Positions 7,901 through 33,029 of a stretch of 64,000 bases of DNA are shown in pieces; within the stretch, counting starts at the first letter, position 1; each line of letters starts with the position of its first letter. The notes under the pieces were generated by a model, which saw only the letters and a list, made by a program, of their open reading frames with translations, was not told where the DNA came from and ran no database searches. Source of the DNA: Penicillus capitatus (lineage: Eukaryota; Plantae; Chlorophyta); NCBI GenBank assembly GCA_965649825.1, contig OZ287702.1, positions 1,106,786-1,170,785 on the forward strand, read 5' to 3'. The position numbers were made by a program, and so were the translations under genes.

Positions 7901-9073
7901 GCCAGAGATCAAATAAACATCGTCTTGAATTCGATCGTTCAATCTATTGGCGATTTGAAAATGGATTGTTCAAATCGAGAATCGCAGACCTCGCTCACTC
8001 GAAACATGATTTCGCTCCTCGAACAGTGTGAGAAGAGCCAAAACATCAGCGCGGAGTTCGCATTAGTCAGAATCATGGGAAGGATTTTCGCCGAGATATG
8101 CATGTTTTCCGAGTCGCTCAAGTTCAATAAAAGGGCCCTAGAGATGTGCGAGCGCATTCGCTGTGGAGAAGATAATCCAGAACTCGTCTCCTGCATCGTG
8201 AACTGCAGCATCTCACTCTCGAAGATGGGAAGGGACAGAGAAGGCCTGCCTCTCATTGAGCGGGCCCTCGGGATGTGCGAGCGTGTCCACGGCGAAGTGG
8301 ACCATCCGGACCTGGTCCGTTGCATCAGAGAGTACGCTATCGCACTCTCAAAGCTGGGAAGGTACAACGAAGCTCTTCCGTTTGACAAAAAAGCCCTCGA
8401 TATGTGCGAGCGTCTCCATGGCGGTAAGGACCATGAGCAACTCGCCGATTGCATCAGAGAGTACGCTATCGAACTCTCAAAGCTGGGAAGGTACAGTGAA
8501 GCTCTTCCGTTTGACAAAAAGGCCGTTGAGATGTACGAGCGCATCCACGGAGGAGCAGACCATCCGGACCTCGCCGATTGCATCAGAGAGTACGCTATCT
8601 CACTCTCGAAGATTGGAGAGGACGACGAAGCTCTACCACTCCTCAGGAGAGCCCTCAAGATGTGCGAGCGCATCCACGGTGGAGTGGACCATCCGGATCT
8701 GATTCGTTGCATCCAAAACTACGGCGCCCTACTCGCAAAGACGGGAAGTAAGAGTCAAGCTTTACCACTCCTCAAGAAGGCCGTCGAAATGTTTAAGCGC
8801 CTCCACAAAGGAGCGGACCATCCGGAACGCGTTAATTGCATCAGAAACTATGCCGTCTTACTCTCGATGTTAAACAGAAACAACGAAGCTCTACCACACC
8901 TTAGGGAAGCCCTCGAGATGTGCGAGCGCATCCACGGAGGAGCGGACCATCCGGACCTCGTCGATTGTCTCAAAGAGTACGCCTTCGGACTTGCAAGGAT
9001 GGAAAGGCACATCGAAAAGGTTATCTTACTTAAAGAAGCGGAAGACATGCTTGATCGACTTGGCAACCAATGA
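4940..9073 (+). CDS. NLR-like STAND NTPase (NB-ARC type) with a helical N-terminal domain and C-terminal TPR array
   Basis: 1377-aa uninterrupted ORF with Walker A GPGGIGKT (~6938-6961), Walker B LYVFDDA, RNBS-like VIVTTR, and seven 43-aa TPRs. Small GT-AG exons between 4244 and 4940 may extend the 5' end. Confidence 0.9.
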   Translation: MLRCSAFASVPGYKELLAQGNFEDICELEVKRHGLVQIFRAGESFAGRIFERMGPFSRSTTVPLFCKGFSDPEESMRGLAHLPQSALHHRVHVLSDQNSGVGKFIYVGDLGLLGGGDREPPSSSDARGHQTVAESSASCSATQRDLTRSERDLVRRVFAKRSYRSLDEVVKAFNETDDNEQKVGLVKVMHKIVYALNDMPIEDATDNRGAIIRECLAMCRLHSAGGEHLLLHKEFFDGLRDMLCGDTLNDRHVMEAIEHTLQGVDTEVFENDPSCLVQLADSLFAAFDPDSMSFSRETFPVQCSSMHALFECVRILHDVSSGGWDPEKLEGLDAKFADWCRRVIDLSEYYPLNFQATLVEQSLTSLRTSKGANRNANNARRIANLARGWMGKYRAVRKAIHLDFDLGKPESVTRAPKQALAQALKQARHSNIVWNEQCRTYHHALNTACFAAMEDPSNFEAFNDLVSSIVLEQEASNREHCKALRFGVVQMLNMLSIHGKAAEVRGTSAETLVSFVERTDEWDWASDADLFSELLDNLAELGVQGHDDEKRAAQVAIGRLISLAHNPECEEALFKWQAEEKNEEELDSLSSGQSRALDSKLFSQVWKSLEDEVCLATAEGHSRPKNDHSLVSPYIVRYFAGRKEEFEKLINAFTTSSEAVVTKAIVGPGGIGKTQLAIKVFERLRNTCNYDKAFWIPSDSRESLFAAFLQIADYLIISAYDEIAVLVKRVHQELGRSRCLYVFDDAPDLDMIRTYLPPQAGHVIVTTRDVGVVGWERDTVQLGPFDECEAWFLAKQFGYTQSANSEGLDDLLELFPLYPLTLAQFFSMMKYEGVSSPAEWFYQAERYAPPTKSEDKAVKMLSAKHDVRGASAMVFLFRSSVLSISNEHGDLGTHCLDILSKLALLDPNGVPIDWVYKWYEHEDLQTKIRTQKSIRLLERYSYVSWNAENNQIYIHAETQLLARQLLLHIDEITTGRAEERKEEAGDKARDQINIVLNSIVQSIGDLKMDCSNRESQTSLTRNMISLLEQCEKSQNISAEFALVRIMGRIFAEICMFSESLKFNKRALEMCERIRCGEDNPELVSCIVNCSISLSKMGRDREGLPLIERALGMCERVHGEVDHPDLVRCIREYAIALSKLGRYNEALPFDKKALDMCERLHGGKDHEQLADCIREYAIELSKLGRYSEALPFDKKAVEMYERIHGGADHPDLADCIREYAISLSKIGEDDEALPLLRRALKMCERIHGGVDHPDLIRCIQNYGALLAKTGSKSQALPLLKKAVEMFKRLHKGADHPERVNCIRNYAVLLSMLNRNNEALPHLREALEMCERIHGGADHPDLVDCLKEYAFGLARMERHIEKVILLKEAEDMLDRLGNQ
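8171..9060 (+). repeat. Tandem 129-nt (43-aa) TPR-coding repeats, about 7 units
   Basis: The GA(C/T)(C/A)AT..G anchor (DHPD/DNPE) recurs at 8171, 8300, 8429, 8558, 8687, 8816 and 8945. Confidence 0.9.
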
Positions 9074-12133: not shown

Positions 12134-13680
12134 AGCTAAATAGAGTTAACTAGTGGCTTGCAGATCAGAACATGTCCTGCACGAGCATAGACATAGAATC
12201 GATACGTCACTTGCGCCGACAATGAGATTAGGATTGCAGAATCGCCAATGCTTAATCCAGTTGTGCGGCTGTTTAACGCAAACCGGGAATCGAACGAATT
12301 CTCGAAGACAGAAAGTGAGTGAGCATTCAGAATTGCGTTTCTTGTCCGTCAGATGTTGTCCCGCTAGCAATGGTCGTCACGACTAGTGAATCAAAAGTCA
12401 AGGTCCTCAGAGTCTCGCGTTTGTGTGAGGCTAGCTGAGTAATGCGGATTAACAAAAAACCAATAGCGGACTCAAAGCCGCGATCTTTTCAACACTGGTT
12501 CGGAGCACATATTGGAGGTAGGTGCACAAACTAGCGTCGGCTAACGTTCTAAATGGTTTGTTCGTGTTTTCATAGAGTCCAGAAGAGCTTCGGTCAGTTC
12601 ATTGTCACCGAGCGAAAGAACTCCAAGTTGTGTTTCATCGTGCGCTTGTAGATGCGCTTCGCATCGGTGACGTTGAAATGCTGCGGGAGATTCAACAGTT
12701 CAGCTGCTTCTGTCACTAGCGGCCCAATCTCCAGAATTCCCGACACCCAACTCGTGTACGGACTTCCGAGACGAAAGACACCTAAAACAGAAATTGGCAT
12801 GGAATCGGGCATCAGATTTTAATTCACCTTTGTTTTTCATTCTCAATGCCAATTCATACCAAAGACGCACGTCGGAATCGGCAGCGATGGCGTTGTACTC
12901 TACTGGATAGCTTTTATCGACTCTCTGCAGGTACCCGGCAAAGTCCTTTGTGGTGGGAGTCGGTGTGATGTCGTCTATGGCGATGTCGTACGTCTTGAGC
13001 GTCTGCTTTGCACTCGTCTTGTAGTCTTTAGACAAGCCTCTCAAGAATCTCTTCAGCTCCGGCGAGCATTTGGCTTTTTTGCAAGCTTTCATCCAAATGC
13101 GTGATGTGTGGATCTCCCAGTAAGCGTCCTGAAGACGCATCGCGTCGAATGCGTCTTTCGGCAATGTGCCATACAACACGCCTGCACAATATTTTTCGAT
13201 GCAGACCGAAAAAAGGCGAAGCACCTTGAATGAATTCTGTATTGAACGCTTTCTCGACGGTGTCGATGTTCTCACACCACAACTGCTCGCTCAAGGTTGC
13301 GTGGACATGAGGGCTGGGAGGACAGTCCCATTTGAATTCTGACACCGTGATGGTGGGGCCGATGTTAATTTCCTCGTCCGCGAATACCCAACTGCTTGTG
13401 TCCTGCTCCTCGTCCGCGAATGCCCAACTGCTTGTGTCCTGCTCCGCGTTCGTCGATGGTTTGTATGTCTCCTTGTGCATGGCGAACAGGGTTAGGAAGA
13501 CACTAATTAGGACAACAATAATGGAAAGGCCCCAACAAAGAAGCTTGGGCCGCAGATCTGTGGTAAACGTTATTTGCGCCGTGACCACCATTTCCTTTTG
13601 CGTCGACGAAGAAGCCGTTACGGAGCGATAGCGTCGAGGAGGTCGCTCAAGTGACGGCGCGTACGACTGTTTGCGACGAT
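12134..13680. repeat. Segmental direct repeat, copy 1 (pairs with 25407-26890)
   Basis: Colinear match from AGCTA(A/G)ATAGAGTTAACTAGTGG to CGACTGTTTGCGACG, with an offset of about 13.2 kb. Confidence 0.95.
12594..13591 (-). CDS. TenA/THI-4/PQQC (haem-oxygenase-like fold) protein with an N-terminal TM anchor, copy 1; 3 exons
   Basis: After splicing 43-nt and 46-nt GT-AG introns it reads EFIQGVLYGTLPKDAFDAMRLQDAYW...TPTPTT...RLWYELA...SPYTSWV...NLEFF, matching the TenA pattern FVQGIGDGTLP..F..Y..QD. It has a 36-nt internal duplication (EQDTSSW[A/V]FADE x2). Confidence 0.75.
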
Positions 13681-13719
13681 TGGGCGATCCTTTCTCAAAG
13701 ATCGAATTAGTAATGTTAA

Positions 13720-14295
13720 TCTTGGAGTTCTGTGATAGTATTCCTAGACCATACGGATTACGACAAACACTAGCAATGCTCTCTAGTACACACCTGCATG
13801 ATGCAGTTGTATGGCTGTTTTTTCTTCATGCACGATGGCATTCATCGAAGACGATGAGCGCGATATCGGAGATACCCATTTCTCTAACCATAAGAAGATA
13901 TCACATCAAAGCGACGAAGAAATCGCTCACTGTCTCCGAAGGAGATTGGGCAGAATCTGTGGCGTCATGACCAAGACATCTCTCAGGATTAGCGACTCCA
14001 GGTAGAGGTATCGAGACTTCGTCATTTAATTGATCCCTCGAGTGTTCAGAAACACGGAGATCCGTGAACTGCTTCAGAACACCCGCCAGTTGATGGGGGA
14101 CCAGTCCTTTTTTAGAGACCAAAAAGAAAATGCATTTCCGTGGTGCCTTTGCGTTCGAAGCCTTGTAGGCCATCTTCGCCGCCACTTCCCGAATCAGAAA
14201 AACAGAAATGAAAGTCTTGCCAGATCCTGTATCCAAGTAGGCAATGACAGTTCTGCGACACGCGGTCGGTAGAGATCCAACTGGCGCTGACGAAT
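13720..14295 (-). pseudogene. Dicer-like N-terminal DExD/H helicase relic, frameshifted and truncated
   Basis: RQRQLDLY / TVIAYLDTGSGKTFISVFLI / IFFLVSK / DVLVMTPQIL / IVFDECH / K.PYNCIMQEYYH follow the Dicer helicase order. At least 3 frame changes are needed, and it stops at the junction with the repeat copy. Confidence 0.8.
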
Positions 14296-15525
14296 CGTCA
14301 CACGCCATCCCTTCTCATCCACCAAATCCTTCACTTGCTACATCTCAGAACTCCTAGATACCATCCACCTTCCACCTGCCACTTTAGACACATGCCCATC
14401 CATACCTTACCATTGGAGTCCGATTTTTGAGATGCTCCCTGCACCACTGCCGCTCTGACAGATACGACAGAGACGGTCGGATTTGTGGGAGTTCGTGTGA
14501 TGAGAGGCGATGGCATGGGAAGATTTGTCAGTACCAGATGGATGGACCGTCGCAGCAGGAAACGGTCCACAAATGGGCATCTCTCTTGGCGGCATCGCGC
14601 GGAGAACACGATACACCATTGATCGACCCATCAACGCCGCTTGCAGTATCTTCGTCGGCAGCTTCGCGTGCATATGGTACAGGACAATCTGAATCGGCGG
14701 GATGTTTCCCGAGACAAGAACACTTAGAGACACAAGCGTCACCCTAAACGTTCCGATAGTGGGCATACCATTATGCATCCTGTATTTTACTTGCAGGGCT
14801 TACTCTCCGTCAAGTCCACTGTGGGAAGCGACGCATGCTTCCGATTGTGACTTGTCGTCGACCTCGAATGCTTGTTGGTTTTCTGAGGGTACACTGCGCC
14901 GAAGAAAGAGTCGTGTAAGATTTCTTTCACGCTGCTTTCGTCGCTCTCGGAGTCCGACTCGCTTATCGTATAGAAATTACCGTCGTCGGATGCGGCGCCG
15001 GATATCGATGGATTCCTTATAATACTTCTCCTACCCACGTACTGCAATGTTACCTGTTACGCTTGTTTTGTTTCGAGTATTCTCTGTTCTGCAATCACGC
15101 AACATTAATAGAAACGAGCTGGGATGTGTTAAGAACACCTTGATTTCTACCTTTCTAGAAAATCGGTGACGTCGGGTGAACTCTACAGAGGACGATATTG
15201 TGCTTCCAGATGGGCAGCTAAGGGTTGATGATGAGTTTAGGCAGAATTCATAGGACGAAAGCGGAAAGCAACATTCCTTGTAAAAACAGAAGGAAAACGG
15301 ATGTGTGCAGAAAAACAATCGAAATGTAAATGAACAACTCGTCGAGAATCTTCGCACATGTATGCGAACATCGTCGACGAGTCGGAAGCGGAGTGCACAC
15401 AATACTATACTTGGCGAGAGGCTTATGTGCTTTGGAAAGTGCACCAGCTGGCAACAGCCAATTCTCGAGTGAAGATTCTTCAGAGTCCCATGGAATCACA
15501 CATCGACACCGACAAGATGGTGTAC

Positions 15526-16900
15526 CTAGCAATTCCTAAAAGGCCTCTTGGACGGGGATGTATCGATCGACGTCGAAAAGAGTTCCTCGGAATCCACTCT
15601 GCTGAGATCTGTCAGCCAAGGATCGATGTAGGTATCATCCTGACGTTCGAGGAAATCATCTTCGCCGGATTCCTCGTCATCGAATCGAACTGAAGCTGCG
15701 CCGGCCAACCTCTGTAAGACAACTGCCAGACAGGCCATCCGCTCGAACTCTTCTAGTGACATGCCAATCATCAGACACGTTGGATACACAGCCACTTCTG
15801 GCATGCAAACTGTCAGCTGCCCTCTGTCTTGCGACGACCATCCACATTCTCTCAGCCAGTGCCCAAGTAAGGCTGCTGAGAATTCTGTTGGCCTTTCCAG
15901 CATCCGAGATTTCCAGTCGTCACACCAGCCATGCAGAGGGTGCCTGATCTTAGAGAACGAACTTGCCGATCTCGATGACACCGAGATCAGACTTTCCTCG
16001 GGGACAGTTTCATCAATGCTTATACGTCTGGATACCGAGTCTGATTCGAGGTTCGAGAGTGGACAGTCTTGCTGGACAGAAGCCACATCTGGATTGGGCT
16101 TGACCTGTCTCCTGTCCGTGCCGCAGGGAGGCATTCCGTGTGCTATCGACTTGACTCCATGTCAAAGGCCGTTGCCTCCGGCGCCTGTGAAGCCAATCTC
16201 CGGTCCACCGAGCCTTGGAGCGCTGCCTTAGCGCCAAGTCGACGACTCGTGGCGCTCGCTTTACAGTGTAACCCATGTGCATCTTGGCCCTTGTCGTACA
16301 GGATCGGGGGCGAATTTGCCAACGGTCTCTGGAATTCACGGTTGCGTATACTGAATCTGTACGCGTCCCCCGCTTCAACGACGTCTGCTGAAGGTGCGAA
16401 CCGACGCACTTGCTCATTCAGCAGGGTGGATTCTCGTCTTCAAGACCAGCACAAACCATTCCGTCGTCCCATCTCTCAGTCTCTCAGTGCATGAGCTTCT
16501 CCAGACGGCCCTGGCAGAACTGGTTGGCCGTCTTTGGGTTACGATGGGAACTGCTCGACGACTGCTCTCGATACAGCTTCCCCTTTTTCTTTAGTGCATC
16601 CAAAACGCACAGGTACCTGTGGCTCGTGAAACTGTCTTGCCTGCTTAGGAATGGCGATGTCCTCATCTCCATGGAGAGGAATTGCATTGCCTCAGGTACA
16701 CCACATCCAGCATGAAACACATTGATCCCGTCAACGTAGTGTCTGTTTCGCCCAAGACGGCGACACAACTCACGACCGAATGGCCGTCTGGAGCTGTATA
16801 GCAGCCTGGTTGGTCTCCTGAGATGCGCCGCAATGCTTGCGTTGCTTACTTTGAGGAGACTGGCACATCGAGACGATCCTTCTTCATGTAAACATTGCTG
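15526..16900 (-). pseudogene. Possible Dicer-like mid-region relic (dimerisation domain to PAZ-connector)
   Basis: MPEVAVYP...FERMACLAVVLQRL (~15700-15805) resembles the Dicer connector PELC.IHP...WRKAVCLPSILYRL. ELCRRL...Y is weakly DUF283-like. No RNase III signature was seen. Confidence 0.4.
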
Positions 16901-17199
16901 TTGGTTTCATTGCTGAGAGCTGTCTGTTTTTTCCAACTGGAAGAGTATCGACACTATAGAATGGCATCCTGCACGCACATGCACTGTAAACAGTCACACG
17001 TGTAACACAAATCATCATGTTATCCTCCAACACTCGCTTCACTCTCTCACTCTGCTCTCTGCGTTTTCTGGGAGTTCAAAAGAAATTGCTATGATGCAAT
17101 ACCGATTCCCTCAACGCTTATCAACAGGTACAACGATCTCATGCGCGCACGCCGACGCTGCTATCATTTCTATCAGAGCTCCTTCCTCTGCGTCTTAAA

Positions 17200-19095
17200 A
17201 CTTGTTCAGAACATTTGAGGTCGGCCAGAACGAAACACCCCATAAAGGTAAAGATTCAGCTGTTTTGGTTGCTGCAACGATAGTGGCATGTCCTCCGCCG
17301 TCCAGCACCACTCCAGAGCTCCACCTCAGAAAGCACGAGAAGATGAATGTGCCATCGAACACTCTCGTGCACATATCACTCTTCCTCGGCGATATGTCCT
17401 ACCTAGACTGCTTCAGAGCAGAATACGAGCAAGACAACTGCTCCAGAACACAGCTGCTCTGCCAACCTGGAAACACGAAAGACGCAGGTCTTTCGTAATC
17501 TCACTCAAAAACAGCGATTCCCTGAGCTCTCTCTTTTCACGCGCTAGCAGACTGCGCTCGGCCAGAAGACTGGACCTGCTGCCATCCGCATGTGTCAGAG
17601 TTGCACCTGCCTGCCCGCAGCTCGCCCGTCACTCTCTGTGCCCATCACCCTGCTCAATGCAACTGGACGAGCGAACGCCGTTGACCGACTGCGCTCTTTC
17701 TTTCTCTGAGGGGCCGTGCATGCATCACCGGCCACTCCGAGTGCCCGAGCACAACGAGGATGTCTGCAGATCGATGGCAAACGACACTTCGGGGCTTCTG
17801 CGAGCGTCCAGCTCCACGGAGAACGACGTCGACTGAAAGGAATCGGTTCCGCGACGCTCCTGTGAACGACTTCTGCGGCGAGTCGGCCCCCAACATCCAC
17901 ATCCGGAGACCAGAGACCTCTAATGTCCGTGTCCTCTGACCGTTAGGCTGCAACCAAGGCGGCAAAAAGGACTTCCCCAGGCTGTAACTGACCTTTGTCT
18001 GTTTCTGCGCGCGCGTTTTCTACCGAGATGGACTGCGAGACAACGACGCCATGTGCCAACGACCCCAAATACACCTTCCCCGGAAAAGAGTAAGTGTTCT
18101 CCGTCTTCCGCCACCTCCGCCGCCATGCGTCATGGCCTCTGAGCCATGCGCTGACTTTTCCAGCGCTATCGCCTTCTGCGAGCGTCTTTTGGCCTGTGCG
18201 GACGTCAGACGCCAGAGAAGAGCTAATGGCCATCCGGTCGCGCAGCATGTGGCTCTTCCTGACGTCTACGCGCGTTTTTCTGTCTTACGGGCCGACGCCT
18301 ACAGACACGTTGCTCTGCATGGCAGAGACTAACTCTTTTTGTGTGGTCTGTAGGTTCTCAGAGATAACCCTACGCGAGGTCAAGGGGAAGTACCCCCCTA
18401 GGGGGTTCGAGGGGCTGGATCCTGCCCAGAGGGAGGAATTATTCTGGGCCCTTAAAGCCCAGTCGACGGCGCAGATGGCGCCTAACAATGAGCCCCCTGT
18501 CCGGTTTGGACCACCCGGTGGCCAAACCGGACAGGACACGACAATGAGGAGGCGCCCCCGTCGAGTTTCCGCCGCGGACCGACAATGGCGCCTCGCTTCC
18601 GACCAAGGCATCCCAGAGGTAAGCCCCTCACATCCACACACACGATTCTTTATGCTTGTTTTGTCTAGGGAAATCCTCCACCGCCATCTGCGCCGAAGCA
18701 GCCAAGCCCAGTAACGCAGCAATCCGCGCATCAGGCGCCGCTGCAGCACCCAAGCCCCCAACAGCAGGAATCCGCGCATCAGGCGCAGCCTCAGCCGCTG
18801 CAGCATCCATGGACATCCATGGATTGCCATCCGCCGCCGCCACCACAGCAGTCATCTGAACCACCGCCACCGCAGCAGCCATGCTATCCGACGCAGCAGC
18901 AGCAACCTTCTGGGACGCAGCAGCAGCAACATATCCCCGGGGCAACCATGCAATGGACCCCCTGTCCACCTCCAGAAAACACCACCCCACCTCCTTGCCT
19001 GCAGCCTGGTCCACCCTATCATCTCTTTCCTCCCCGTACCCAAGTCTTTTGCATCCCTGCATGCCCTCCACCTATCATTTCCCCCCGTCCTTTTA
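17200..19095 (+). pseudogene. Spliced ORF of unknown family with a Pro/Gln-rich tail, probably element-borne and decaying
   Basis: GT-AG intron at ~18620-18668 joins ...ASDQGIPE to GNPPPPSAPKQPS...QQQQ. Trp/Cys/Met codons are scattered through the low-complexity tail. The 5' exon structure is unresolved. Confidence 0.4.
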
Positions 19096-19405
19096 AATTC
19101 TCCTTCACCGCCCGACCTCCCCCATTTCCAGAGCGCATCTCAGTTTTTTCGCTGAGGTGCCAGCCTGTGATTCCCCCTCGGCCATTCATTTTTTCTGTGG
19201 GGCCGCTAGGCATTCCTCCGAGACCTTACTTCATGTCCGGAGAATGCGTCCGTGTCGGTACGTCCGCCATCCCAGAGCGGTTATTTTTCCTCTCCGGAGC
19301 TTGCGTAAGCCACTCTTCTACCTTTTCTCTTCTATTGTGTGTTTCTGTGTAGGTTACTAGCGGACAATAGCTCAAAGAGCCTTATCTGATAGGCTCTTTG
19401 GACAC

Positions 19406-19600
19406 TGTTTTCTTTTGGGGGCTGAAAAAAGAGAAAAAGTAAAAGAAAGTTTTTTTTTTGTTTTTTGTGGAGTTAGAGCTCTGCTTGCTGCCAGCTGTTT
19501 TCTTTTTCTTGGGGGGCTGCAAAAAGAAAAAAGAAAAAAAGTTTTTCAGTTTCTTCTGTGGAGTTAGGGATCTGCTTGCTGCCAACTGTTTTCTATTTTT
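19406..19600. repeat. About 2.2 copies of a ~90-bp A/T-tract repeat
   Basis: Unit CTGTTTTCTTTT..GGGGGCTG(C)AAAAA...GTGGAGTTAG..TCTGCTTGCTGCCA repeated. Confidence 0.8.
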
Positions 19601-20136
19601 TGCCTTTCAGAGCGTCCCTCGACAGTCATTTTTGGTATCGTGCACGGGACTGCATTGATTTTTCCTCATGTGTGCACCTTAACCAGGATCTGGATTGTTT
19701 GAGGGACCAGATTTAGACAAAGATCTGTTTTGCTTTTGTTTTTTGGCTGCCGCATGGCTGTTGTTTTGTGCCAGTGGCACTCATGGCTGGGAGATCGATT
19801 TTAATTTTTTGTACATATTAGTAATAAATGTGGGCAGGACATATTTCTGAGGTGCGGTGGTTCATTTGGCAGTGGTACATGGCTTTACTGTGTGGCGGTG
19901 GTGTACTTGTGCGGTCATTTCTGTTTTTCTGCGGTGGAAGATTATCATGTGCTCAGTTCTGGCGAGAAGGCGGCTTGTCAGATGGACTGGTTCTTAGTTC
20001 TGGAGCAGAGAAGGGCGAGGGGTGCTCATATTCACTGGGAAATGGATTGGATAATCTGGAGACCGTTTTCTAGAGCACTGGACTTCCAGGTGGTTTGTGC
20101 TGGTGGTGCATGGCGTGCTGGACAGGTGTCTCTGGT

Positions 20137-20338
20137 GTAGTGGACGTTGAGGTGTCCGGTGCTGGTGGTGGACGACGCGATGGACAGGTCTGATGCAGTG
20201 GATGTTGAGGTGTCCGGTGCTGGTGGTGGACGACGCGATGGACAGGTCTGAAGCAGTGGATGTTGATGTGTCCGGTGCTGGAGGAGGATGACGCGATGGA
20301 CAGGTCTGAAGCAGTGGATGTTGAGGTGTCCGGTGCTG
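20137..20338. repeat. 58-bp tandem repeat, about 3.5 copies
   Basis: G(C/T)AGTGGA(C/T)GTTGA(G/T)GTGTCCGGTGCTGG... units start at 20137, 20195, 20253 and 20311. Confidence 0.9.
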
Positions 20339-20340
20339 TG

Positions 20341-23300
20341 ATGTCATGGTCCATGTGCTGGACTGTCTTTGGGATGCAAAGTGTGCCGAAATGCTCCATG
20401 CTCTGGGAGGACCTGGGACGAGTGATGGATCTGTTTGTACAACAATATCCATGGATCATTACAGTATTCATTTGTATGGCACGGTAAGTGACATGATGAC
20501 TCGCTTTGTAGAGCAGAAGCTAATGAGGTGTCTTCTCTGCAGGATAGTGGATGCAACGGTGATTCGGTTTTTCAGGAATGCGAACATGACAAATCCGGAT
20601 TCGGGTTACAAGGCATGCTAAACAAAGGAGAGGTTTGCAGCATCATATGAACATGGTGAGAAGCCGCCAGACAGAGATCGTTTGAAACTTCAAGGTACAG
20701 TGTCCCCGTTATGATCATCTTATGCTCAAATTTGAAATCAGATACAAGAGAGGATTGAATCATGTTCATACATACTGAAGAGATGATTTCCAGAGAGAAG
20801 TCATCGCCAATCCAATGTCGTCATCTGACATCGTGAAGAGGATTCATGAGGCACAGCCTGGGACATAATGACAATGACCATTCCACAAATGCGACAAGAC
20901 TGAAGAGATCTCTCTTCATTGAAGGACGCAGTTTGGTTTTCATGCACAACAGACCCGTCGCATATTCGATTCTGCAAGGCTTGTGGACATCTATCTGACC
21001 TGATGTTCCCCGTCCATGATGGAATCTAAGGTTCCCAAAGAGGTCCTTTCATTTTAACATTTCGTGCTAAGTGGTGCTCTGTTCTGTAGAAAAGATGACA
21101 TGTCGAGAAGAGCATGCAAAACACACCACAGTTTCCATCCTGCGTGAGCTCGGTTGAATCAGCTGGAAAGTCTAAAGGACACTGGAGTATCGGTTTCTGC
21201 AGAGTGAATTCGTCTGACCAAGGAGCCTTTCGATGCGTACGTCAGCCCATCGCATCCTGCACTCACCAACACATTTCTCAAGGTAATCTGCAGATGCCTC
21301 ATGCTCCTTCGTGTACACTTGATTTGACAGGCATTTAAAGAGGCAGTGTCGAAGGAAGTGGCAGCAGTGGCCTGGATGCAATGACGAAGACGATTTGGTC
21401 AAGAGAAGACAGTTTGGATCGAGTCTGTTCTACAAGCCTTGGATCTATCGTCTCGTGAAAAGCGATGCATTCGGCAACAGATTCATCAATCATGACGACG
21501 GAAGACATGATTGCTGGATGACAGTGAAATCCTGGATCTCGCGGTGCTATGGCATTGAGTGTTCTCTGGTGTCTGTCTGGACTGGAGTAAAGAAGAAGAC
21601 TCAGATCCCAGACAACGACTGCCAAAGCCACCCTGGATTGAAGAGAGATATATCTTGTCTCTCCTGGATTCATGCACTCGGACAACGATGATGGTACAAC
21701 CAAACGCCGTTAATCATCTCAAAATACTGGATACGCCATGAAGAAAGCTGGAATGTATTCTTTGCCAACAGTTGATAAGATGCCCTGGATCAGATTTTCG
21801 AGGCATAGGGACTCTGAACTCAAGAGTCTCGCCGAAATGCACAGGCCATCCTGGATGCAAGATCATCAGAATAAAGGAGCCTTGTTGATCGCCAAGTCAA
21901 CTAACTGTTTTCCGAATTGGTCAGTCTGACAGTCGCCTGAGAGCTGCATGGGATCAAAAGATTGGCCCCCGACCTCCTCGAACATTCCTTTTGTTCACTC
22001 CAGGTATGTCTCCCTATGTCGCCTATGCACTCGATGAGCCTGCATCTCAGAATCAATGTGGAGTTAAAGAGGAGGACAAATGGGGCATGGACACTCGATG
22101 AGGTCAATCAAGATCTCAAACGGATCACTGTCATCCCTTTAGTGCTTGCTTCTTCGAGAAGAGGCAATTTTTCCCTTCACAAACGAGATGCTCGACATGA
22201 AATAAGATGCATCCAATCTGGCAGAGGAAGACGTGCTTCAGACGAACATTTGAGGTAATTCCTTCAGCCAGTTTGCCCAGTCAAAGACCACCTGTTGCAG
22301 ACCAAGCGTGGATGTTGGCTATCACAGTTGCGGAGAAGCATGAGTGGCTGTGCTGCATCAGATTCCCTCGGAGCACTGCTATTGGATTTGTCAGAGACGT
22401 GTGCCCGGGAATGCTGACGAGCTGGATGTCCGAGTTAGCCTGAATGCGGCTCCTCATTCCGAAGGCTCGACAGAAGCTGCCGCTGCATTCTCCGATGACA
22501 GAACAAGATTCAGAAGGATCTGAAGACTGACAGCCGCCCTTCCACAGGGCAGAGGACGAATTGGTGGTGTCTTCCTCGACCATGGCCGGGAGAGGCGCCA
22601 CTTGACAACACGAGCACTGCACTGACATTTCTCGTCAGGTAGAGAATGTCACATCTGCTCTTGTGCTCAAGGATACAGTGTCATCAGGATGAGATGAGGA
22701 AGACGTGTCAGAAGGAGATATAGACTCCTGGTAGATGTCTTTCGGAAGAGGCACTCATTTCCTCTTCATCTCACTGACAGAATCGAGAACGGACCAGCCG
22801 ACAGACTTTGAAGAGAACAACACGGCAAATGGGCAACTGGACACCTGCAGAGAGAAGAGCCAACAGCTGTGGGAGGCGGAAAGCAGAAAGGCTTCTAGTG
22901 AGGCAGTCAGTGCCGACGTTCGAGAAGGCCAGAAGCAGTCCTGGATCAGATTTCCTTGCACTGACCGATCCACTCCACCCACCCCAGGCAGCGGCAGCCG
23001 CATCAGGGGGGATGGTTGGGCGACAGGGAGAGCAGAGACAGTGACATTGGGCAGCCACGTGATTCGGTCGATGCCCACAGGTAAGCGTCCTTTGGATCGG
23101 CATCCAGGGCCGTCTCTTCTGTCCCTTTTCTCTCTCTTTCTCCCCTGGATGCCCGTCTTCTTCGATCTGGGCAACGGAATCGGCCTTTGTATTTCTTCCT
23201 GTGTGCCTGTGTATTGTCTTTTTGTGTGCCTGGCAGTTGTCATTGCTTTCCTTGTCTGCTTTTGTGCTCTGTGATTGTGTTTACCTTTCTTGTGCCTGTC

Positions 23301-23693
23301 GCCGATTCCGTTGTCCCCTATTGCATGTCTTTTCATCCTTCCTTTCTTTGCTGTTTTCTCTTGAACTGTGTTCTTTAATTTACATTGTAATGTTCATCCT
23401 GTCCTGTTCTTTCTGTTTTCTGTTTGCGTTTCCTTGCTTTCTTGATTCACTGTGTGTGCTGGGTCCCTTTTTGGACCTCTTATTTGCATGTCCTCGCAGC
23501 GCGCCGGATCCAAAGGACGATTCCAGGGATATTCGCCAATCACACTGGGAATTCTCACCCTTCCCAGGGCTGCTTTTCGGGAGAGGTCACTGGTACCTCT
23601 GCCAGGTTGCATCGAGCGGCGCCGCTAGCCAAAGGTATGTTCTCATGTCACTCAGATGTCACATATAACTCTGCCTTTGCAGATGGGGTTTAA
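20341..23693 (+). pseudogene. Multi-exon ORF (~860 codons) inactivated by about 22 in-frame stops without frameshifts; family unknown
   Basis: Phase-compatible exons 20341-20483, 20543-20694, 20742-21042, 21090-21282, 21331-22003, 22051-22254, 22301-23080, then ~23499-23635 and a short last exon ending TAA at 23693. By manual count the internal stops are 17 TGA, 3 TAA and 2 TAG. Confidence 0.65.
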
Positions 23694-24280
23694 CAGTACT
23701 CTCCAAGGTGAGAGTTGCAGACAATGTTCCCCTTTACAACATTGACTACAGAGGTAATCCAATCTAGCGATCTCTGTTTGCATTTGGCTGAATAGATTTT
23801 CTTAGGAGGATGGCTGGCATGCAAGAACCAAAAAAGGATCAACCTAAACATCCGCGAGGGAGTGTCGTTAATTCAGAGCGTGGCTTGATCTCCCTCCGGT
23901 GATGGCTTTCAGATACGCATCCAGGCCGTCTTTTCCATTCCTTTTCCGTTTCGCTCTCTCTCCCTGGATGCCAGTTTTCCTCTTCTGGGCCAACGGAGCC
24001 TCTGTTTCCTTTCTGACGGGTGACCATCTCCTTGTTTGCTGTATTGCTTTTTGTGCTTCTTCCTGACTTTACAGCATTCCTGCTTTGTTTGTGAACTTGT
24101 CTGTTCTTATATTGACTTTGTATGAAGATCTTTTATTTCTTTCACTGTGTCTCTGTCCTTGTTTATTTTTGCTCCTGTGAGTTTTCATTTTGTGTTTCGT
24201 ATTGTCGTTTTCGGTCCCTTTTTGGACACTTAACTGCATGTCCGCGCAGCGCGCCGGATCTGAAAGCCCCTGGAGATGGT
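23110..24280 (+). repeat. Degenerate duplication of a CT-rich intron plus acceptor/exon start (~23110-23530 vs ~23927-24280)
   Basis: Shared CCCTGGATGCC..T..TC.TCTGGGC.AACGGA and GGTCCCTTTTTGGAC.CTTA..TGCATGTCC.CGCAGCGCGCCGGATC blocks. Confidence 0.7.
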
Positions 24281-24399
24281 TGGGCCCACTCGCACCCTCA
24301 AAACTCTCCCACACTGCCCGAGCAGATAGATCCTATTATGCATGCCAATGGCACAATCCTCCGTTGCAGTTCGTCGACCATGCATCATCAAGTGAACGC

Positions 24400-25050
24400 T
24401 CTCTTCTCTCTCAATCGTTGTTACTAATCTCATGCCACAGGTGAAATGACTCATGCCTCCAACGAAGATGTCTGAAGGACCTTGATTCGAAGTCTGCACA
24501 TGAGTGACTGTTTGAACTCTTTCCTGGCTTTCGGATTCTTGTACCTCTTTTGATTTTCTTCGAAGGAAGAGAAAGGTATTCTCTACTGGAGAACAGCTAG
24601 TTGCCGCTGCTGTGGTTTTCCCTAGTCTGTCAGTGGGTGATCTCAGGAGTTTTGATTTCCAGTGGCAGGTGACATCTTGTTCTGCCCTGAGAACACACGG
24701 TTCAGCATTTACTGTTCGGCGTGTTTCTTTTCTGGATTTATTTCATTCTCCGTCTTCTTTTTTCGCACTCTCTACCCACGTTGTTGACCCAATGCGGCTG
24801 TTGACTTCGTTACATGACTAATGACTGTTTTAACTGGCTCCCTAGTTTCCGGGTCCATGAAGAACGCGATGGATGATTGCCAAATGTGCCGACAGATACC
24901 TAATTCGCCCTCGAATTGCTCACCAAAAAATGTGTGATTCTCGAATATGCCTCGGTGATGCCGAAGACGCAGTTGAGGATGTAGACGACTGACTGTCTTG
25001 TTGATGGAGATATAACTAATGTAGCAGACCCCCACATGCCACTGGCACAC
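24400..25050 (-). pseudogene. Second stop-riddled ORF relic in the element
   Basis: Frame GIFENHTFFGEQFEGELGICRHIWQSSIAFFMDPETREPVKTVISHV...QQRG*RVRKKK... continues through TAG/TAA/TGA stops in Gln/Arg-rich context. Confidence 0.35.
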
Positions 25051-25406
25051 GGGGCTGTAAGACCTGAATCATATATGTAGCAGAGGACAACGGTGGTCGG
25101 GATATATTCTGTCCTGAGTACTACACCCGTGGCTTGCGCTGTCTGATCTTGATCGGCAGCCCGAAAACGGCGAATGCGAACGTGAACGCTACCGCTGCAA
25201 CATATCCACGAGGAAAGACCAGTGGATATTATAACAGCGTCATCGGAACGTACGTTTATAGGCTGCAGTCACACAGTCGTTGTTGACTTGAAAGATCCCG
25301 ACTGTTACAAATTCGCCTGTCTTTGCGCACTGATCGTCGAATTTGAGGACGGGGTTTTGAGAGTTCTGTCCCATTCATGAACGGACAGTGAAAAGATTAG
25401 GAACAT

Positions 25407-26890
25407 AGCTAGATAGAGTTAACTAGTGGCTTGCAGATCAGAACATGTCCTGCACGAGCATAGACATAGAATCGATACGTCACTTGCGCCTTGCAGAATC
25501 GCCAATGCTTAATCCAGTTGCGCGGCTGTTCGGCGCGGACCGGGAATCGAACGAATTCTCGAAGACAGAGAGTGAGTGTGCATTCAGGATTGCGTTTCTT
25601 GTCCGTCAGATGCTGTCCTGCCAACGATGGTCGTCACGACTAGCGAATCAAAAGTGAAGGTCCTCAAGAGTCTCGCGTTTGTGTGAGGCTAGCTGAGTAA
25701 TGCGGATTAACAAAAAACCAACAGCGGACTCAAAGCCGCGATCTTTCCAACACTGGTTCGGAGCACATATTGGAGGTAGGTGCACAAACTAGCGTCGGCT
25801 AACGTTCTAAATGGTTTGTTCGTGTTTTCATAGAGTCCAGAAGAGCTTTAGTCAGTTCATTATCACCGAGCGAAAGAACTCCAAGTTGTGTTTCATCGTG
25901 CGCTTGTAGATGCGCTTCGCATCGGTGACGTTGAAATGCTGCGGGAGATTCAACAGTTCATCTGCTTCTGTCACTAGCGGCTCAATCTCCAGAATTTCCG
26001 ACACCCAACTCGTGTACGGACTTCCGAGACGAAAGACACCTAAGGCAGGCATTGGCATGGAATCGGGCATCAGATTTTAATTCACCTTTGTTTTTCATTC
26101 TCAACGCCAATTCATACCAAAGACGCAGGTTAACGTCAACAGTGATGACATTGTACTCTACTGGATAAGTCTTATCAACTCTTTGCAAATGACCCACAAA
26201 AGCCGTTGTGGTGGGAGTCGGTGTAATGTCGTCTATCGCGATGTCGTACGTCTTGAGCGTTTGCTTTGCAGTCGTTTTACAATCCTCCGCCAAGCCACTC
26301 AAGAATCTCTCCAGCTCCGGCGAGCATTTCGCTTTTTTGCAAGCTTTCATCCAAATGCGTGATGTGTGCATCTCCCAGTAAGCGTCCTGAAGACGCATCG
26401 TGTCGAATGCGTCTCTCGGCAACGTGCCATACAACACTCCTGCACAAGTCGTTTTCGATGCAGACCGAGAAAAAGGCGAAGTACCTTGAATGAATTCTGT
26501 GTTGAACGTTTCTTCGACGGTGTCGATGTTCTCACACCACAACTGCTCGCGCAAAGTTGCGTGGACATGAGGGCTGGGAGGACAGCCCCATTTGAATTCT
26601 GACACCGTAATTGTGGGACCGATGTTAATTTCCTCGTCCGCGAAGACCCAACTGCTTGTGCCCTGCGCCGCGTTCGTCGATGGTTTGTATATCTCCTTGT
26701 GGATTCTGAACAGGCTTAGGCAGACAATAATGGAAAGGCCCCAACAGAGAAGCATGGGCCACAGATCTGTCGCGAACGTTCTTCGCGCCGTGGCCACCAT
26801 TTCCTTCTGCGTCGACGAAGAAGCCGTTACGGAGCGATAGCGTCGATGAGGTCGTCCAAGTGACGGCGCGTACGACTGTTTGCGACGGTT
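25407..26890. repeat. Segmental direct repeat, copy 2 (pairs with 12134-13680)
   Basis: See copy 1. The 3' non-coding part is about 98% identical by manual comparison of ~180 nt. Confidence 0.95.
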
Positions 26891-26899
26891 GGACGACAT
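25852..26899 (-). CDS. TenA/THI-4/PQQC-fold protein with an N-terminal TM anchor, copy 2; 3 exons
   Basis: Same exon structure (45-nt and 46-nt introns). Reads EFIQGVLYGTLPRDAFDTMRLQDAYW...RLWYELA...NLEFF, with an intact frame from ATG 26899. Confidence 0.75.
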
Positions 26900-26961
26900 G
26901 TTTCAAAATGGAAGCTAAAACGACCTATTCCGTCTTGAGAGTGAGACAAAGCGTGTTTGGA

Positions 26962-28318
26962 CTAGGGTTTGCTCCATCCACGAAAACTCTCGCTCAGTCT
27001 AAGCGTTTCCGACAGGACAGAAGGGTGGCGATCAAACATCACACCCTTCGAAGCTTCGCCATTGACGAATGCCAACTCCTCCACTTTTCTCTGAGCCTTC
27101 GCTGCATTGATCTTCGTGTCTTCGCTCCAAATCTGATCGCATGTTGTGAGTTCGACGAAAGAGAGTAAGCAGAAGAGCGATACCTTCAGTACACTCGCCT
27201 GAAGAGCACGTCCAAAGGAGAAAGAGAGTCGCCACGGAGCCTTTCGGTTGTCCAGCGCCCTTTTGTTGATTTCGGCCAGGTTGAGACTGGCTTCGGCTTC
27301 GCTCTGCCCACCACTCAGAAACATGACGCCCGGTATAGCAGGAGGCACGAATCTAGAAGAGCCAGAGTGTCACTTCATTTTTCAGGATCCGATCACACCT
27401 GGCCAGTGTTCTCAGTGTCTCCTCGGCGACGTGATGTGACTTCTCTCCGGAAAGAGAAGGCACGCCGTTCATCATCTGTGGCTTCAGAAGGCAGTCCTCC
27501 AGCACTACCGGCCGTTTCCACAGCTCAGCGATGCATGCAGACAAGACACGGGCCGACGCTTCGCAGACTTGAGTTATGGGCTGCGTGCCATCCAATAGGA
27601 TTTCCGGCTCCACGATTGGCACCAAGCCGTACGACTACACAGCCAACGGTCGTTTGGATAAACAGAGTTTTCGGCCGACTTGACTCATGGCAGCGTATTC
27701 GGCTAACTGACAGGCATTGATCTGAATGGCCTTGTCCGATGGCAAGTCCTTCCCTAACTAAGAACCAAAACGTGCAGCTGACATGCGTTTCTTTGGGGCC
27801 ACCTTTAGAGCGGCTCGCCATTTTGTGAAGGTGGCACCTTGGGCCTTGTATTTCTCCAGGTTCTCGGCCAAATGTTCAAGGCCTTTCGTTTCCGTTTCAC
27901 TCTGCGTCCCCGCAATTTCCACCAGCCCCTGCGACCACAGATCTTCAACTCACGCCCGATCCTCAAGTACGACCGCACTTCATCGACTTTGATGCCAGGG
28001 AGGATTCCACGTTGCCTCATACACTCGACGAACGGTGTCCCGTCGCTCGCGGATTGAAAGAGCGTTTCCTTGTACAAAATTGCACCGGCGTAGGCACGAC
28101 CCACGTCGGCCGTATAGAACAGTTCTCGGTACGCTCGTCGCGTCTCCTTCTCATAGCGTCCCGTACAGCGACAGGCTGTGTCGTGTAGAACGCACCTCGT
28201 CATTCGGCAGACCGAACTTCTCAAAACGTTTGCCAATCGTTCCTGTGCTCTCATCCGATGCCAAAATCCCTTTCCCCCAGGCGCAGAGGCTCGTTACGTG
28301 GTCGTGCATCTCAGACAT
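26962..28318 (-). CDS. FBA: Fructose-bisphosphate aldolase, class I
   Basis: [59 protein letters not shown] and FSFGRALQ, with several short GT-AG introns. Confidence 0.95.
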
Positions 28319-31262: not shown

Positions 31263-33029
31263 CTAGTGATGAAATCCCGATTTATAAAGAGAATGTGCCG
31301 CCGTTCCGTGCTCCGCCTCTTCGTCCATGCGACGAGTCCGAATCTGAAGCTCGAATGTGGCTTCTTCCAAATGGTCTTCCTCCTCGTGAATCCACGAACG
31401 GTCGTTCTTGGCGGGATCATCAATCACAAAAGATCCATCGTGAAAGGCCTCCAGCTCCGGATACATCACTCCGCCATGCGCATTCTCCTCTCCGTTGTCA
31501 CACGGCTCGCTGGGGACCTCCTCTGCCAAAGTCGGCATCTTGATTCTGTGTGTCGTGTGCAGACTTTGATATCCATTGGGCTTGGGATTCTTGATGTAGT
31601 CTTTGGAACGATGCGGAAGCACCGGCCACAGTTCGTGAGCAAGGTCACAAATAACATAGCATCCCCTGACAGCCATTTCTTCACATATCTCTTCTGGACA
31701 TCTCGGCCATGCGACAACGCGAACACCCAAGATGTCATGAATCTCTTCTCTTCGTCGGCCGCCTTTGGCAAGCTCCGTCAACGAGAGTTCTTTCCTCATG
31801 AAGCTCGATGGAGACTTCACGCGTGTCTTGATCTCGACTCTATCGACCAGAGCTTTCAATTCTCTTCTTTCCTCCATTCCGTGCGTCAAAGAATTTCGAA
31901 TTTCGTCAAAGATGCCTGAACACATCCACAAAGTCTCCCGATCTTTCTGATCATTCGACATCCGAACGGACTTTCGCTTCGAAACGTGATTTCTCGAAGA
32001 TGCGCCACACTTGATGAATGCGATGCCGGAAAGAGAATCTCCATACAATAGTCCTCCATTCCTGCAGCCAGCTCATTCATATCCAATCTCCTTCCCACGG
32101 AGACATAAATGTACAATCCCTCCAATGCATACGGAACAAGAACATCCTTGGGGACCATCTACATCACAAACCCTTGGAGCGGCTGGATTTCCAGTGCAAC
32201 AAACGTAAGAATGGTACAGCACATCCAAACTCGACACGAACTGCAGAAGGATCGCACGTCTATCACACTGTTCAAAAATCATTTCCTGAATCTTCAGTGC
32301 CGTCGCATCTTCCAACACGTCAACACCATCCACAAGCTCCCGTATACTGATAACGGTTTTCACGAGCTCTGTCACATCAGGCCCCATGACCGTCCTCACA
32401 TCCTCCACGGACACATGTTCTTTCCAAACCTAACCGCACCGACAAACTGTTCGGGACACACAGATCGCTAGAGATGCCGTCACGTACGTGCTCAACGAGA
32501 AGGGCAGCCGCGATGGATGCTGCATCTGCGTACGGGTTTTCTAGACAGGACGTTTTCTCTTGTTTGGATGTCTGGATGCAAGAGATGATCCCACGTGCTT
32601 GACGGAGGGATGTGAGAATGGATGCCACCGACATGGACTTCTGCACCAAACGTCGACCCAGAAAAGGAAATTCCAAAGGGATCCTCTGACTGATGCTCAT
32701 CGAGAAGCGCAATGCCTTCACGATCATCACGACATTCTCATCCGCCACATCCCCTTTCCCAACGATCCCTTCTCCATTCCTCAATCGATCGTTCCATTAC
32801 CTTCAAGTGTCTGTAAGGAAGCAAAAAAGCGATTCCAGGCCTCGGACTGTTTGAACGGCTTCGAAGGGTTCGTCGTCGCGACCCGTTCATGGGGTTGCTT
32901 CTCTGCGTGATGCAGACGCCGCTGAGCGACATGTCTCAGGCGCAGCGGTCCGAATCGCGTTGTGTGGATCTTCTTCGCCTTCTCTGTGCGTCTGAAGCAC
33001 TGGATGCGGCAATCGACTGCCAGAGCCAT
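31263..33029 (-). CDS. RSH: RelA/SpoT homologue ((p)ppGpp synthetase) with a degenerate HD domain, probably plastid-targeted
   Basis: RVKS, IHDILGVRV, RSKDYIKNPKPNGYQSLHT and FELQIRT..M..EAE.G.AAH.LYK are present. The HD position reads AAALLVEH. Confidence 0.88.

Follow-up and report, generated by a model that had tools for sequence, protein, structure and literature searches.

The closest described relatives of the proteins examined here are the BtTenA-like thiaminases, a subclass of TenA_C that has been reported patchily from aquatic bacteria and red algae as well as from invertebrates and fish (Stentz et al. 2023, PMC10277260). BtTenA degrades thiamin and is packed into extracellular vesicles, and the Cys and Glu residues are almost universally conserved in its subclass, the published BtTenA-like members keeping Cys164 and Glu229 (Bt numbering), with a single exception for each residue (PMC10277260). 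The TenA_E proteins form a separate clade that is active on formylaminopyrimidine (PMC10277260, PMC10470507). We analysed a 64-kb stretch of the green alga Penicillus capitatus (64,000 nucleotides of contig OZ287702.1, positions 1,106,786 to 1,170,785 of the forward strand; hereafter the window), which carries two paralogous TenA-like genes, named copy 1 and copy 2. In the TenA protein of B. subtilis, the nucleophile Cys135, the general acid/base Glu205, and Tyr112 with its hydroxyl are needed for catalysis, and the fate of these positions in the window proteins is central to the description below.

On balance, we consider it probable that the two proteins are an anchored branch of the BtTenA-like subclass with a degenerate catalytic site and would act as non-catalytic extracytoplasmic binding proteins, and that the divergence between the copies is a gene-conversion mosaic around an old island. 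The BtTenA-like thiaminases are barely understood and were recognised as a patchy, secreted TenA subclass only in 2023. What is new in the window is a bryopsidalean green-algal version of the BtTenA scaffold that is predicted to be membrane-anchored, has lost the Cys/Glu/Tyr set, appears to have been under long purifying selection, and is present in two copies in one species. The pair is a candidate for an enzyme-to-binding-protein transition in vitamin B1 biology, where components for the uptake and sensing of pyrimidine vitamers are still missing.

Family, catalytic positions and predicted anchoring

Both genes lie on the minus strand and consist of three exons with intact spliced reading frames. 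The copy 1 gene extends from an ATG at 13591 to the end of the stop codon at 12594 (12594-13591) and encodes 302 amino acids, and the copy 2 gene occupies 25852-26800 from its conserved ATG to the stop codon and encodes 285 amino acids. An exhaustive HMMER search yielded 49 relatives, and a family profile was built from 43 sequences, namely the two window proteins and 41 relatives. When a single sequence was compared with solved structures by phmmer, the best match was 2a2m (BT_3146) with an E-value of 2.9e-6 (30 bits), and the other TenA structures scored 16-19 bits. With the 43-sequence profile, BT_3146 was matched in the Protein Data Bank (PDB) with an E-value of 1e-62 (215 bits) and B. subtilis TenA over its full length with 9e-29 (104 bits), while the TenA_E structure 2f2g gave a weak and partial match (4e-8). 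The Pfam family PF03070 is matched individually by 35 of the 43 family members; its gathering cut-off (22) is not reached by the window proteins, copy 2 scoring 13.6 bits (E-value 0.056) and copy 1 giving no match.

AlphaFold2 prediction from a single sequence reached a mean predicted local distance difference test score (pLDDT) of 41, and a model based on the family alignment was used instead, in which the domain at residues 80-285 has a pLDDT of 93-98. Based on a Foldseek search with this model, BT_3146 is the top match, followed by thiaminase II structures, with template-modelling (TM) scores of 0.80-0.84 normalised to target length, and all of the top 38 matches belong to the TenA family. 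Haem oxygenase (HmuO) and CADD were also found, with E-values of 4e-4 to 1e-3 and lower TM-scores. The TenA-like fold proposed in a preliminary description of this DNA was thus borne out by the profile search, the AlphaFold2 model, and the Foldseek comparison. Judged from the sequence and the model, each protein is composed of an N-terminal hydrophobic helix, a linker, and a C-terminal TenA-fold domain of the BtTenA-like (BT_3146) subclass.

The relatives were recovered unevenly by the different searches. Word-index protein searches with copy 2 and with the clade alignment returned the pair's own open reading frames (ORFs) and P0008, and missed the 75%-identical exon-2 ORF P0003 that the exhaustive search found. 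A metagenome scan gave matches confined to two contigs, which carry P0004 and its near-identical variant P0173. The N-terminal domain of the orange carotenoid protein appeared in the Pfam results with E-values of 0.0035-0.11, below the cut-off, and was treated as helical noise. Three further members of the BtTenA-like subclass, P0007, P0012, and P0024, have signal peptides and intact catalytic residues and come from the malawimonad Gefionella okellyi, the killifish Fundulus, and an assembly of the fern Adiantum nelumboides (several copies). These sequences widen the published host range of the subclass, and the fern records could be contamination.

To locate the catalytic positions, the 43-sequence profile was aligned with the B. 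subtilis TenA structures and the positions were counted to the chain numbering. Asp44 is kept, as D141 in copy 1 and D124 in copy 2. Tyr163 and Phe208 are likewise unchanged in both copies, and Tyr47 and Tyr139 are each Trp in both, so that an aromatic residue is kept. The Cys135 position is occupied by D226 in copy 1 and N209 in copy 2, and the Glu205 position by N292 and N275, respectively, whereas Asp44, Cys135, Tyr163, and Glu205 are present in 38 of the 38 other members of the family alignment. Tyr112 is also lost, being replaced by Phe in both copies.

Three further sequences share these losses: the syntenic orthologue of a sister species (L002), the intronless orthologue P0004, and P0008. 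Together with copy 1 and copy 2 they form a monophyletic clade in a neighbour-joining tree. In the order copy 1, copy 2, L002, P0004, and P0008, the Cys135 position reads D/N/D/H/S, the Glu205 position N/N/N/N/L, the Asp44 position D/D/D/V/L, and the Tyr112 position F/F/F/F/T, and the residue table contains no conserved candidate catalytic residue among the five clade members. The sister branch is P0005, a protein of Caulerpa lentillifera, which keeps all of the catalytic residues and has a signal peptide. His274 is the sole invariant His in the four-sequence clade alignment, and because only one is invariant, a diiron site of the 3-His/3-carboxylate type or a haem site is taken to be absent. 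Canonical thiaminase II activity is very unlikely in both copies because the catalytic Cys and Glu are replaced, Tyr112 is Phe, and the proteins appear to be anchored at the N-terminus. The preliminary description had aligned these positions by hand and had stated that Asp44 is kept, that Cys135 becomes Asp or Asn and Glu205 becomes Asn, and that the proteins are not thiaminase II; the profile mapping agrees on every point and adds the replacement of Tyr112.

An N-terminal transmembrane helix, also proposed there for both copies, agrees with the Kyte-Doolittle profiles. The putative transmembrane or signal-anchor helix covers residues 17-38 of copy 1 (13478-13543, minus strand) with a 19-residue maximum of 2.66, and residues 13-31 of copy 2 (26708-26764, minus strand) with a maximum of 2.12, where the AlphaFold2 model has a helix at residues 16-35. 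The helix of copy 1 contains a 15-nt insertion and is 5 residues longer than that of copy 2. N-terminal maxima of 1.96-2.66 were found in 5 of 5 clade members, with values of at most 1.39 beyond residue 60, and the hydropathy scan detected no second hydrophobic segment in the five proteins. The linker that follows the helix in the window species is acidic, rich in Ser and Thr, and of low confidence in the AlphaFold2 model. These features point to single-pass, N-terminally anchored, or possibly secreted, proteins.

Furthermore, four cysteines (copy 2 residues C73, C89, C139, and C144) are invariant in a six-sequence alignment of the clade and its Caulerpa sister and are absent from the rest of the family. 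They would fit two disulfides, predicted as C73-C89 and C139-C144, that form under oxidising conditions outside the cytoplasm. We also asked whether the N-terminus is a plastid-targeting leader and rejected this in view of the acidic linker and of the general expectation for primary-plastid algae, which to our knowledge do not use signal-peptide leaders for plastid targeting. As a separate observation, an N-x-T sequon is present in the ectodomain of copy 2 (residues 260-262, 26021-26029) and of copy 1 (residues 277-279, 12763-12771; NVT, NIT in the sister species) and is missing from both P0004 and P0008. N-glycosylation at this site is possible and would be in keeping with a secretory route.

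A divergence island in a homogenised block

The two genes are contained in a directly repeated block (12134-13687 and 25407-26896) with an identity of 91%, and the differences within it are distributed very unevenly. A maximum chi-square analysis identified a 170-bp divergence island in the second half of exon 2 (alignment columns 756-925; 12870-13039 in copy 1 and 26128-26297 in copy 2, both minus strand), and its statistic was reached in 0 of 300 permutations. The island encodes the end of helix 146-169, helix 181-196 with the Tyr112 position, and the start of the former active-site helix with the Cys135 position. In total, 11 of the 41 amino-acid differences between the copies are found in helix 181-196 and the first turns of helix 199-222. 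A nine-codon patch includes the Cys135 position itself. In copy 1 it reads NAIAADSDV with Asp226 (12868-12894, minus strand), close to NAISANSDV of the sister species, and in copy 2 it reads NVITVDVNL with Asn209 (26126-26152, minus strand), which is derived and has 6 amino-acid changes relative to copy 1.

Next to the island lies the youngest homogenised tract, which consists of the end of exon 2, intron 2, exon 3, and the first ~190 nt of the 3' untranslated region (UTR). It was delimited by silent-site and 3' non-coding divergence at 12408-12869 in copy 1 and 25665-26127 in copy 2 (both minus strand). Among the first 187 aligned nucleotides past the stop codon, the copies differ at 4, whereas each copy differs from the sister species at 30-40% of sites. 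The 3' non-coding divergence between the copies is mosaic as well, with 4 differences in 187 nt, then 16 in 147, and then 0 in 84. The preliminary description had counted about 4 differences in about 180 nt of 3' DNA and 11 in the 27 nt of the patch codons, and our counts are 4 in 187 and the same 11 in 27.

The silent sites are informative about the age of these segments. Between the copies, the 65-codon tract around the island has a synonymous divergence (dS) of 0.77 and a non-synonymous divergence (dN) of 0.13, giving a dN/dS of 0.17. The rest of the coding sequence has a dS of 0.11 and a dN/dS of 0.45, and the end of exon 2 together with exon 3 has a dS of 0.02 and a dN/dS of 1.10, calculated from 1 synonymous and 4 non-synonymous changes; exon 3 belongs to the youngest homogenised tract on the basis of this dS of 0.02. 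Either copy compared with the sister species gives a dS of 0.5-0.6 and a dN/dS of 0.22-0.23. The silent-site contrast between the island tract and the remainder is significant (Fisher p = 6e-7). In the tract (alignment columns 741-936), the copies agree against the sister species at 14 of 53 variable sites, compared with 256 of 333 outside it. Copy 1, copy 2, and the sister-species orthologue are about equally distant from each other in the island tract, while elsewhere the two copies are sisters.

The two lineages have not changed equally in this tract. We found 24 lineage-specific changes in copy 2 and 11 in copy 1, and the dS between copy 1 and the sister species is 0.51 in the tract and 0.58 elsewhere. 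A hand count of the branch changes in the tract (13 non-synonymous with 12 synonymous for copy 2, 2 with 8 for copy 1) gives a dN/dS of roughly 0.3 and 0.07, respectively, a difference that is not significant (Fisher p = 0.13). In the nine-codon patch, the copy 2 branch has 7 non-synonymous and 2 synonymous changes, which is about the neutral rate, versus 6 and 10 in the rest of the tract, and this excess is not significant either (Fisher p = 0.10).

Since dS in the tract is raised to the between-species level and the local tree shifts to a star, we read the 1.5-kb block as one that has been homogenised by repeated gene conversion at several different times, with the exception of the island. 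In the island, the two sequences are of the same age as the divergence from the sister species with its single copy, and both versions are under purifying selection. Two histories leave a pattern of this kind: gene conversion acting on paralogous sequence that is old, and the import of a tract from a third paralogue. The duplication may have preceded the species split, with one copy later lost in the sister species, and copy 2, which lies at the ancestral locus (see below), seems to carry the derived island sequence. More generally, a diverged coding patch beside a near-identical UTR should be taken as a signature of gene conversion unless the synonymous sites say otherwise.

Weighing the explanations

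According to the explanation that we favour, the proteins would no longer hydrolyse thiamine or aminopyrimidine, and they would act as non-catalytic binders in the lumen of the secretory pathway or on the cell surface. Their presumed ligand is a small aromatic compound, with a thiamine-related pyrimidine as the most plausible candidate. The same residue losses are seen in the positional orthologues of the sister species and of a more distant relative, and some of these relatives lack Asp44 too. Several points weigh against this explanation. The putative ligand-binding role is deduced from residue patterns, and the Asp at the nucleophile position could in principle be a nucleophile itself; TenA_E proteins are active without the Cys. 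The variability of the pocket helix (D/N/D/H/S) fits a changing specificity and equally a simple loss of constraint on the pocket. Instead of an anchor, the hydrophobic N-terminus could represent a signal peptide that is cleaved off, above all in P0004 and P0005. The match to the fold involves some circularity, the AlphaFold2 model having been built on a TenA-like alignment, and the island statistics come from about 44 synonymous sites and a single outgroup species. In addition, within the island it is copy 1 and not the positional orthologue, copy 2, that lies nearer to the sister species, so that an old duplication followed by conversion needs an extra event.

That the proteins are still enzymes with an altered chemistry, such as an Asp/Asn hydrolase acting on another substrate, an amidohydrolase of the TenA_E type, or a catalyst with some other haem-oxygenase-fold chemistry, seems to us unlikely. 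The window species does keep Asp44, Tyr163, and an aromatic pocket, purifying selection acts on both copies, and TenA_E proteins work without a Cys (PMC10277260, PMC10470507). Across the clade, however, no candidate catalytic residue is conserved at any of the former Cys135, Glu205, and Asp44 positions, the single invariant His of the four-sequence clade alignment leaves no 3-His/3-carboxylate diiron site, and haem oxygenase and CADD are much weaker Foldseek matches than TenA. The new haem-oxygenase-fold chemistry offered as one option in the preliminary description is unsupported on the same grounds, that is, the nucleophile position reads D/N/D/H/S and one His is invariant in the clade. The loss of the catalytic residues might also be taken to mean that one or both copies are functionless relics on the way to becoming pseudogenes. 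The faster protein evolution of copy 2 in the island tract (dN/dS of ~0.3 against 0.07, p = 0.13) and the copy 1 indels in the anchor and linker would fit such decay, yet the ORFs and splice sites are intact in both copies, every indel is in frame, dN/dS against the sister species is 0.22-0.23, and intact orthologues occur in three further organisms in which the synteny is kept. We regard decay as highly improbable.

For the divergence between the copies, the preliminary description had favoured a recent duplication followed by positive selection that diversifies the pocket, and indeed 6 of the 9 patch residues differ beside a nearly identical 3' region. The silent sites contradict this. Synonymous divergence in the tract is seven-fold above that elsewhere (0.77 versus 0.11) and equals the between-species level, the dN/dS of the tract is 0.17, and the local tree goes from ((copy 1, copy 2), sister) to a star; we give this idea hardly any credence. 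Selection against gene conversion, keeping the island apart because the paralogues differ in ligand specificity at the two pocket-lining helices and converted variants are removed, is a more serious but still doubtful proposal. It modifies the idea of the preliminary description, in that the peak of divergence would mark differences of functional importance. The rest of the 1.5-kb block was apparently converted at least once, at several ages, and the island never; the differences are concentrated in helix 181-196 and the start of helix 199-222 (11 of 41), and copy 2 replacements in the patch run at about the neutral rate (7 versus 2, against 6 versus 10 in the rest of the tract). Nevertheless, the excess in the patch is not significant (p = 0.10), the dN/dS of the tract is low, and a 170-bp gap left unconverted between random conversion tracts is not improbable by chance.

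Slightly less probable still, in our judgement, is a recent duplication of copy 1 and copy 2 with the island of copy 2 introduced as a conversion tract from a third, more divergent paralogue or pseudogene. In the tract, copy 1 is ordinary in its distance from the sister species (dS of 0.51 against 0.58 elsewhere) and copy 2 is the outlier, with its 24 lineage-specific changes against 11 affecting synonymous and non-synonymous sites alike, and the sister species is single-copy in both contigs. Against this stand the searches for a donor: tblastn found no third copy in the 64-kb window, the copy 2 ORF is alone in its 90% cluster, and no further close relatives emerged from searches that did not cover the rest of the contig and genome directly. 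The search for paralogous donors proposed earlier has thereby been answered in part, with none in the 64-kb window, while the mosaic fits either an old island or an imported tract, the latter having been named in the preliminary description as a refutation of its own claim.

An extension of the favoured explanation would make the pair non-catalytic receptors at the cell surface or in a lumen, each for a different B1 vitamer (thiamine, hydroxymethylpyrimidine (HMP), aminomethyl- or formylaminomethyl-pyrimidine), with selection against conversion keeping the helices distinct. We put this forward as a long shot. If true, such a receptor pair would represent the first pseudo-enzyme with a binding role to have arisen from TenA, and it would add a new component to the scavenging of B1 by algae, here in a siphonous green alga.

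Gene models, locus and relation to known systems

The introns of both copies are short and have GT..AG ends. Intron 1 is located at 13182-13224 in copy 1 (43 nt) and at 26440-26484 in copy 2 (45 nt), and intron 2 is located at 12782-12827 and 26040-26085, respectively (46 nt each; all minus strand). The splice positions are the same in the two copies, the length of intron 1 differing by 2 nt, and L002 has introns at the same positions (43 and 43 nt) that have diverged more than the exons. The intron models are supported because the positions are shared by both copies and L002, the ends are GT..AG, and the intronless P0004 aligns straight across both splice junctions. Removal of intron 1 from copy 1 restores the frame and the alignment to P0004. 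Intron 1 of copy 2 is in frame and without a stop codon, and its retention would add 15 residues that have no match in homologues. Intron 2 follows from the spliced ORF and the alignment of the copies with each other and, for copy 1, with L002. The earlier statement that both copies are intact and identically spliced therefore holds; the end coordinate of 26899 given with it does not. We place the conserved start of copy 2 at 26800 because the ATG at 26899 is missing in copy 1 and in the sister species, whose leader has an in-frame stop. The upstream in-frame ATG and its 33-codon extension (26801-26899, minus strand) are confined to copy 2, and the extension is probably a non-coding 5' leader.

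The leader of about 100 nt (13592-13692 and 26801-26901 in the window; 9499-9600 in L002) shows ~20% divergence between species, about the level of the exons, versus 30-40% for the 3' UTR, which suggests a functional leader or a regulatory element. In the linker of copy 1, a 36-nt tandem duplication (13371-13449, minus strand; EQDTSSWAFADE / EQDTSSWVFADE) occurs in neither copy 2 nor the sister species.

The locus of origin was identified based on synteny. The 3' part of a class I fructose-bisphosphate aldolase gene, recognised by homology, is the conserved upstream neighbour of the TenA-like gene at 26962-27625 (minus strand), and copy 2 adjoins this gene on its downstream side, at the parental locus. 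The order aldolase to TenA-like is kept in L002, L008, and L003, and the longer order RelA/SpoT, Aha1, aldolase, and TenA-like in both sister-species contigs (L002 and L008), each of which has a single TenA-like gene. A coral-metagenome contig has the C-terminus of an aldolase directly upstream of P0004. It follows from the aldolase synteny in these relatives that copy 2 is at the ancestral locus. Copy 1 lies 13.3 kb away and is the transposed daughter copy; beyond either end of the block, its flanking DNA no longer resembles the sister locus. L002 and L008 come from one sample (ERZ26696514) as collinear contigs of 598 kb and 4.08 Mb with coverages of 162x and 180x, and a single residue distinguishes their TenA-like proteins; the contigs probably represent two haplotypes or two strains. 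The aldolase gene has an apparent intron of roughly 50 nt, as read from the ORF translations.

Between the copies, the Pfam scan (13.7-25.4 kb) found no gene with a thiamine-related or any confident domain. Observed in this interval were a fragment of a ResIII-helicase-like ORF at 13901-14308 (minus strand), low-complexity ORFs rich in Pro and Gln at 18.8-19.4 kb, a 58-nt tandem repeat at 20139-20338, a 91-nt T-rich repeat at 19408-19602, and a pair of repeats at 23466 and 24216, spaced by 750 bp. A 1377-aa ORF at 4940-9073 (plus strand) encodes an NB-ARC domain followed by many TPR_10/TPR_12 repeats and contains a 129/258-nt tandem repeat at 8210-8983; the locus of the sister species has a diverged counterpart at its corresponding end (L002 18134-20142). 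The distance from the TenA-like gene to the NB-ARC gene is 16 kb in the window versus 7 kb in the sister species, and a comparison of 13700-25400 with L002 11192-18134 revealed no detectable similarity. The interval seems to turn over quickly, which may be linked to the placement of copy 1.

The window DNA as a whole is eukaryotic nuclear with a GC content of ~50%, and an Rfam scan of it gave no match. A 2.4-kb stretch at 51900-54300, between a pyruvate kinase gene and glycerol-3-phosphate dehydrogenase-like ORFs, has a GC content of 0.38-0.44 compared with 0.48-0.54 elsewhere in the window. At 36075-40863 (plus strand), two long overlapping ORFs of 967 and 647 aa possibly form one large gene, the C-terminal part of which resembles D-Ala-D-Ala ligase/ATP-grasp proteins, judged by eye from the translation. 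A RelA/SpoT homologue is encoded at 31263-32048 (minus strand) and an organelle-type fused glycyl-tRNA synthetase at 59299-61644, the best named matches of the latter ORF being from Bryopsis (56%), Ostreobium (55%), and Chlorella (56%), with a EukProt protein at 59%. Taken together with the Caulerpa protein that is sister to the clade, these matches put the host among the chlorophyte green algae, probably in the Bryopsidales or close to them. The best PDB matches of the aldolase had suggested Toxoplasma and Babesia, while pyruvate kinase was uninformative, and an alveolate origin was discarded in view of the synthetase and Caulerpa results.

Among the known systems, BtTenA (BT_3146, PDB 2a2m and 2a2o) is the closest in sequence and structure, with the same domain length and helix order. 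Unlike BtTenA, the window proteins have Asp or Asn for Cys164, Asn for Glu229, and Phe at the Tyr112 position, and they possess a long N-terminal anchor and linker and four extra conserved cysteines. Many eukaryotic BtTenA-like members carry signal peptides in the family alignment, which also includes the Caulerpa protein, the malawimonad protein, and the fern record as members of this subclass. B. subtilis TenA, a thiaminase II / aminopyrimidine aminohydrolase (PDB 1yaf, 1tyh, and 2qcx), shares the fold and full-length profile homology, and the positions of its Asp44, Tyr163, Tyr139, and Phe208 are conserved or aromatic in the window proteins. In contrast, it is cytosolic, and its Cys135, Glu205, and Tyr112 are all replaced in the window proteins; the structure 2qcx is that of the Y112F mutant. 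TenA_E proteins such as Arabidopsis At3g16990 (PDB 2f2g) likewise lack the Cys, but the window proteins differ from them in lacking the Glu205 equivalent as well, and they group with the BtTenA-like TenA_C subclass instead. LysR2, a regulator of the TenA family (PDB 9wdg, PMC12817078), likewise reuses the TenA/haem-oxygenase-like scaffold without the ancestral chemistry. It is a cytosolic partner of a bacterial transcription factor, and beyond the fold no relationship to the window proteins was seen (E-value 1.9e-9, low rank). At the level of the genes, neofunctionalisation under gene conversion is a known model for duplicated genes with a divergence island. The window pair resembles this model in its sharp silent-site mosaic, with what appears to be an old island flanked by young converted tracts.

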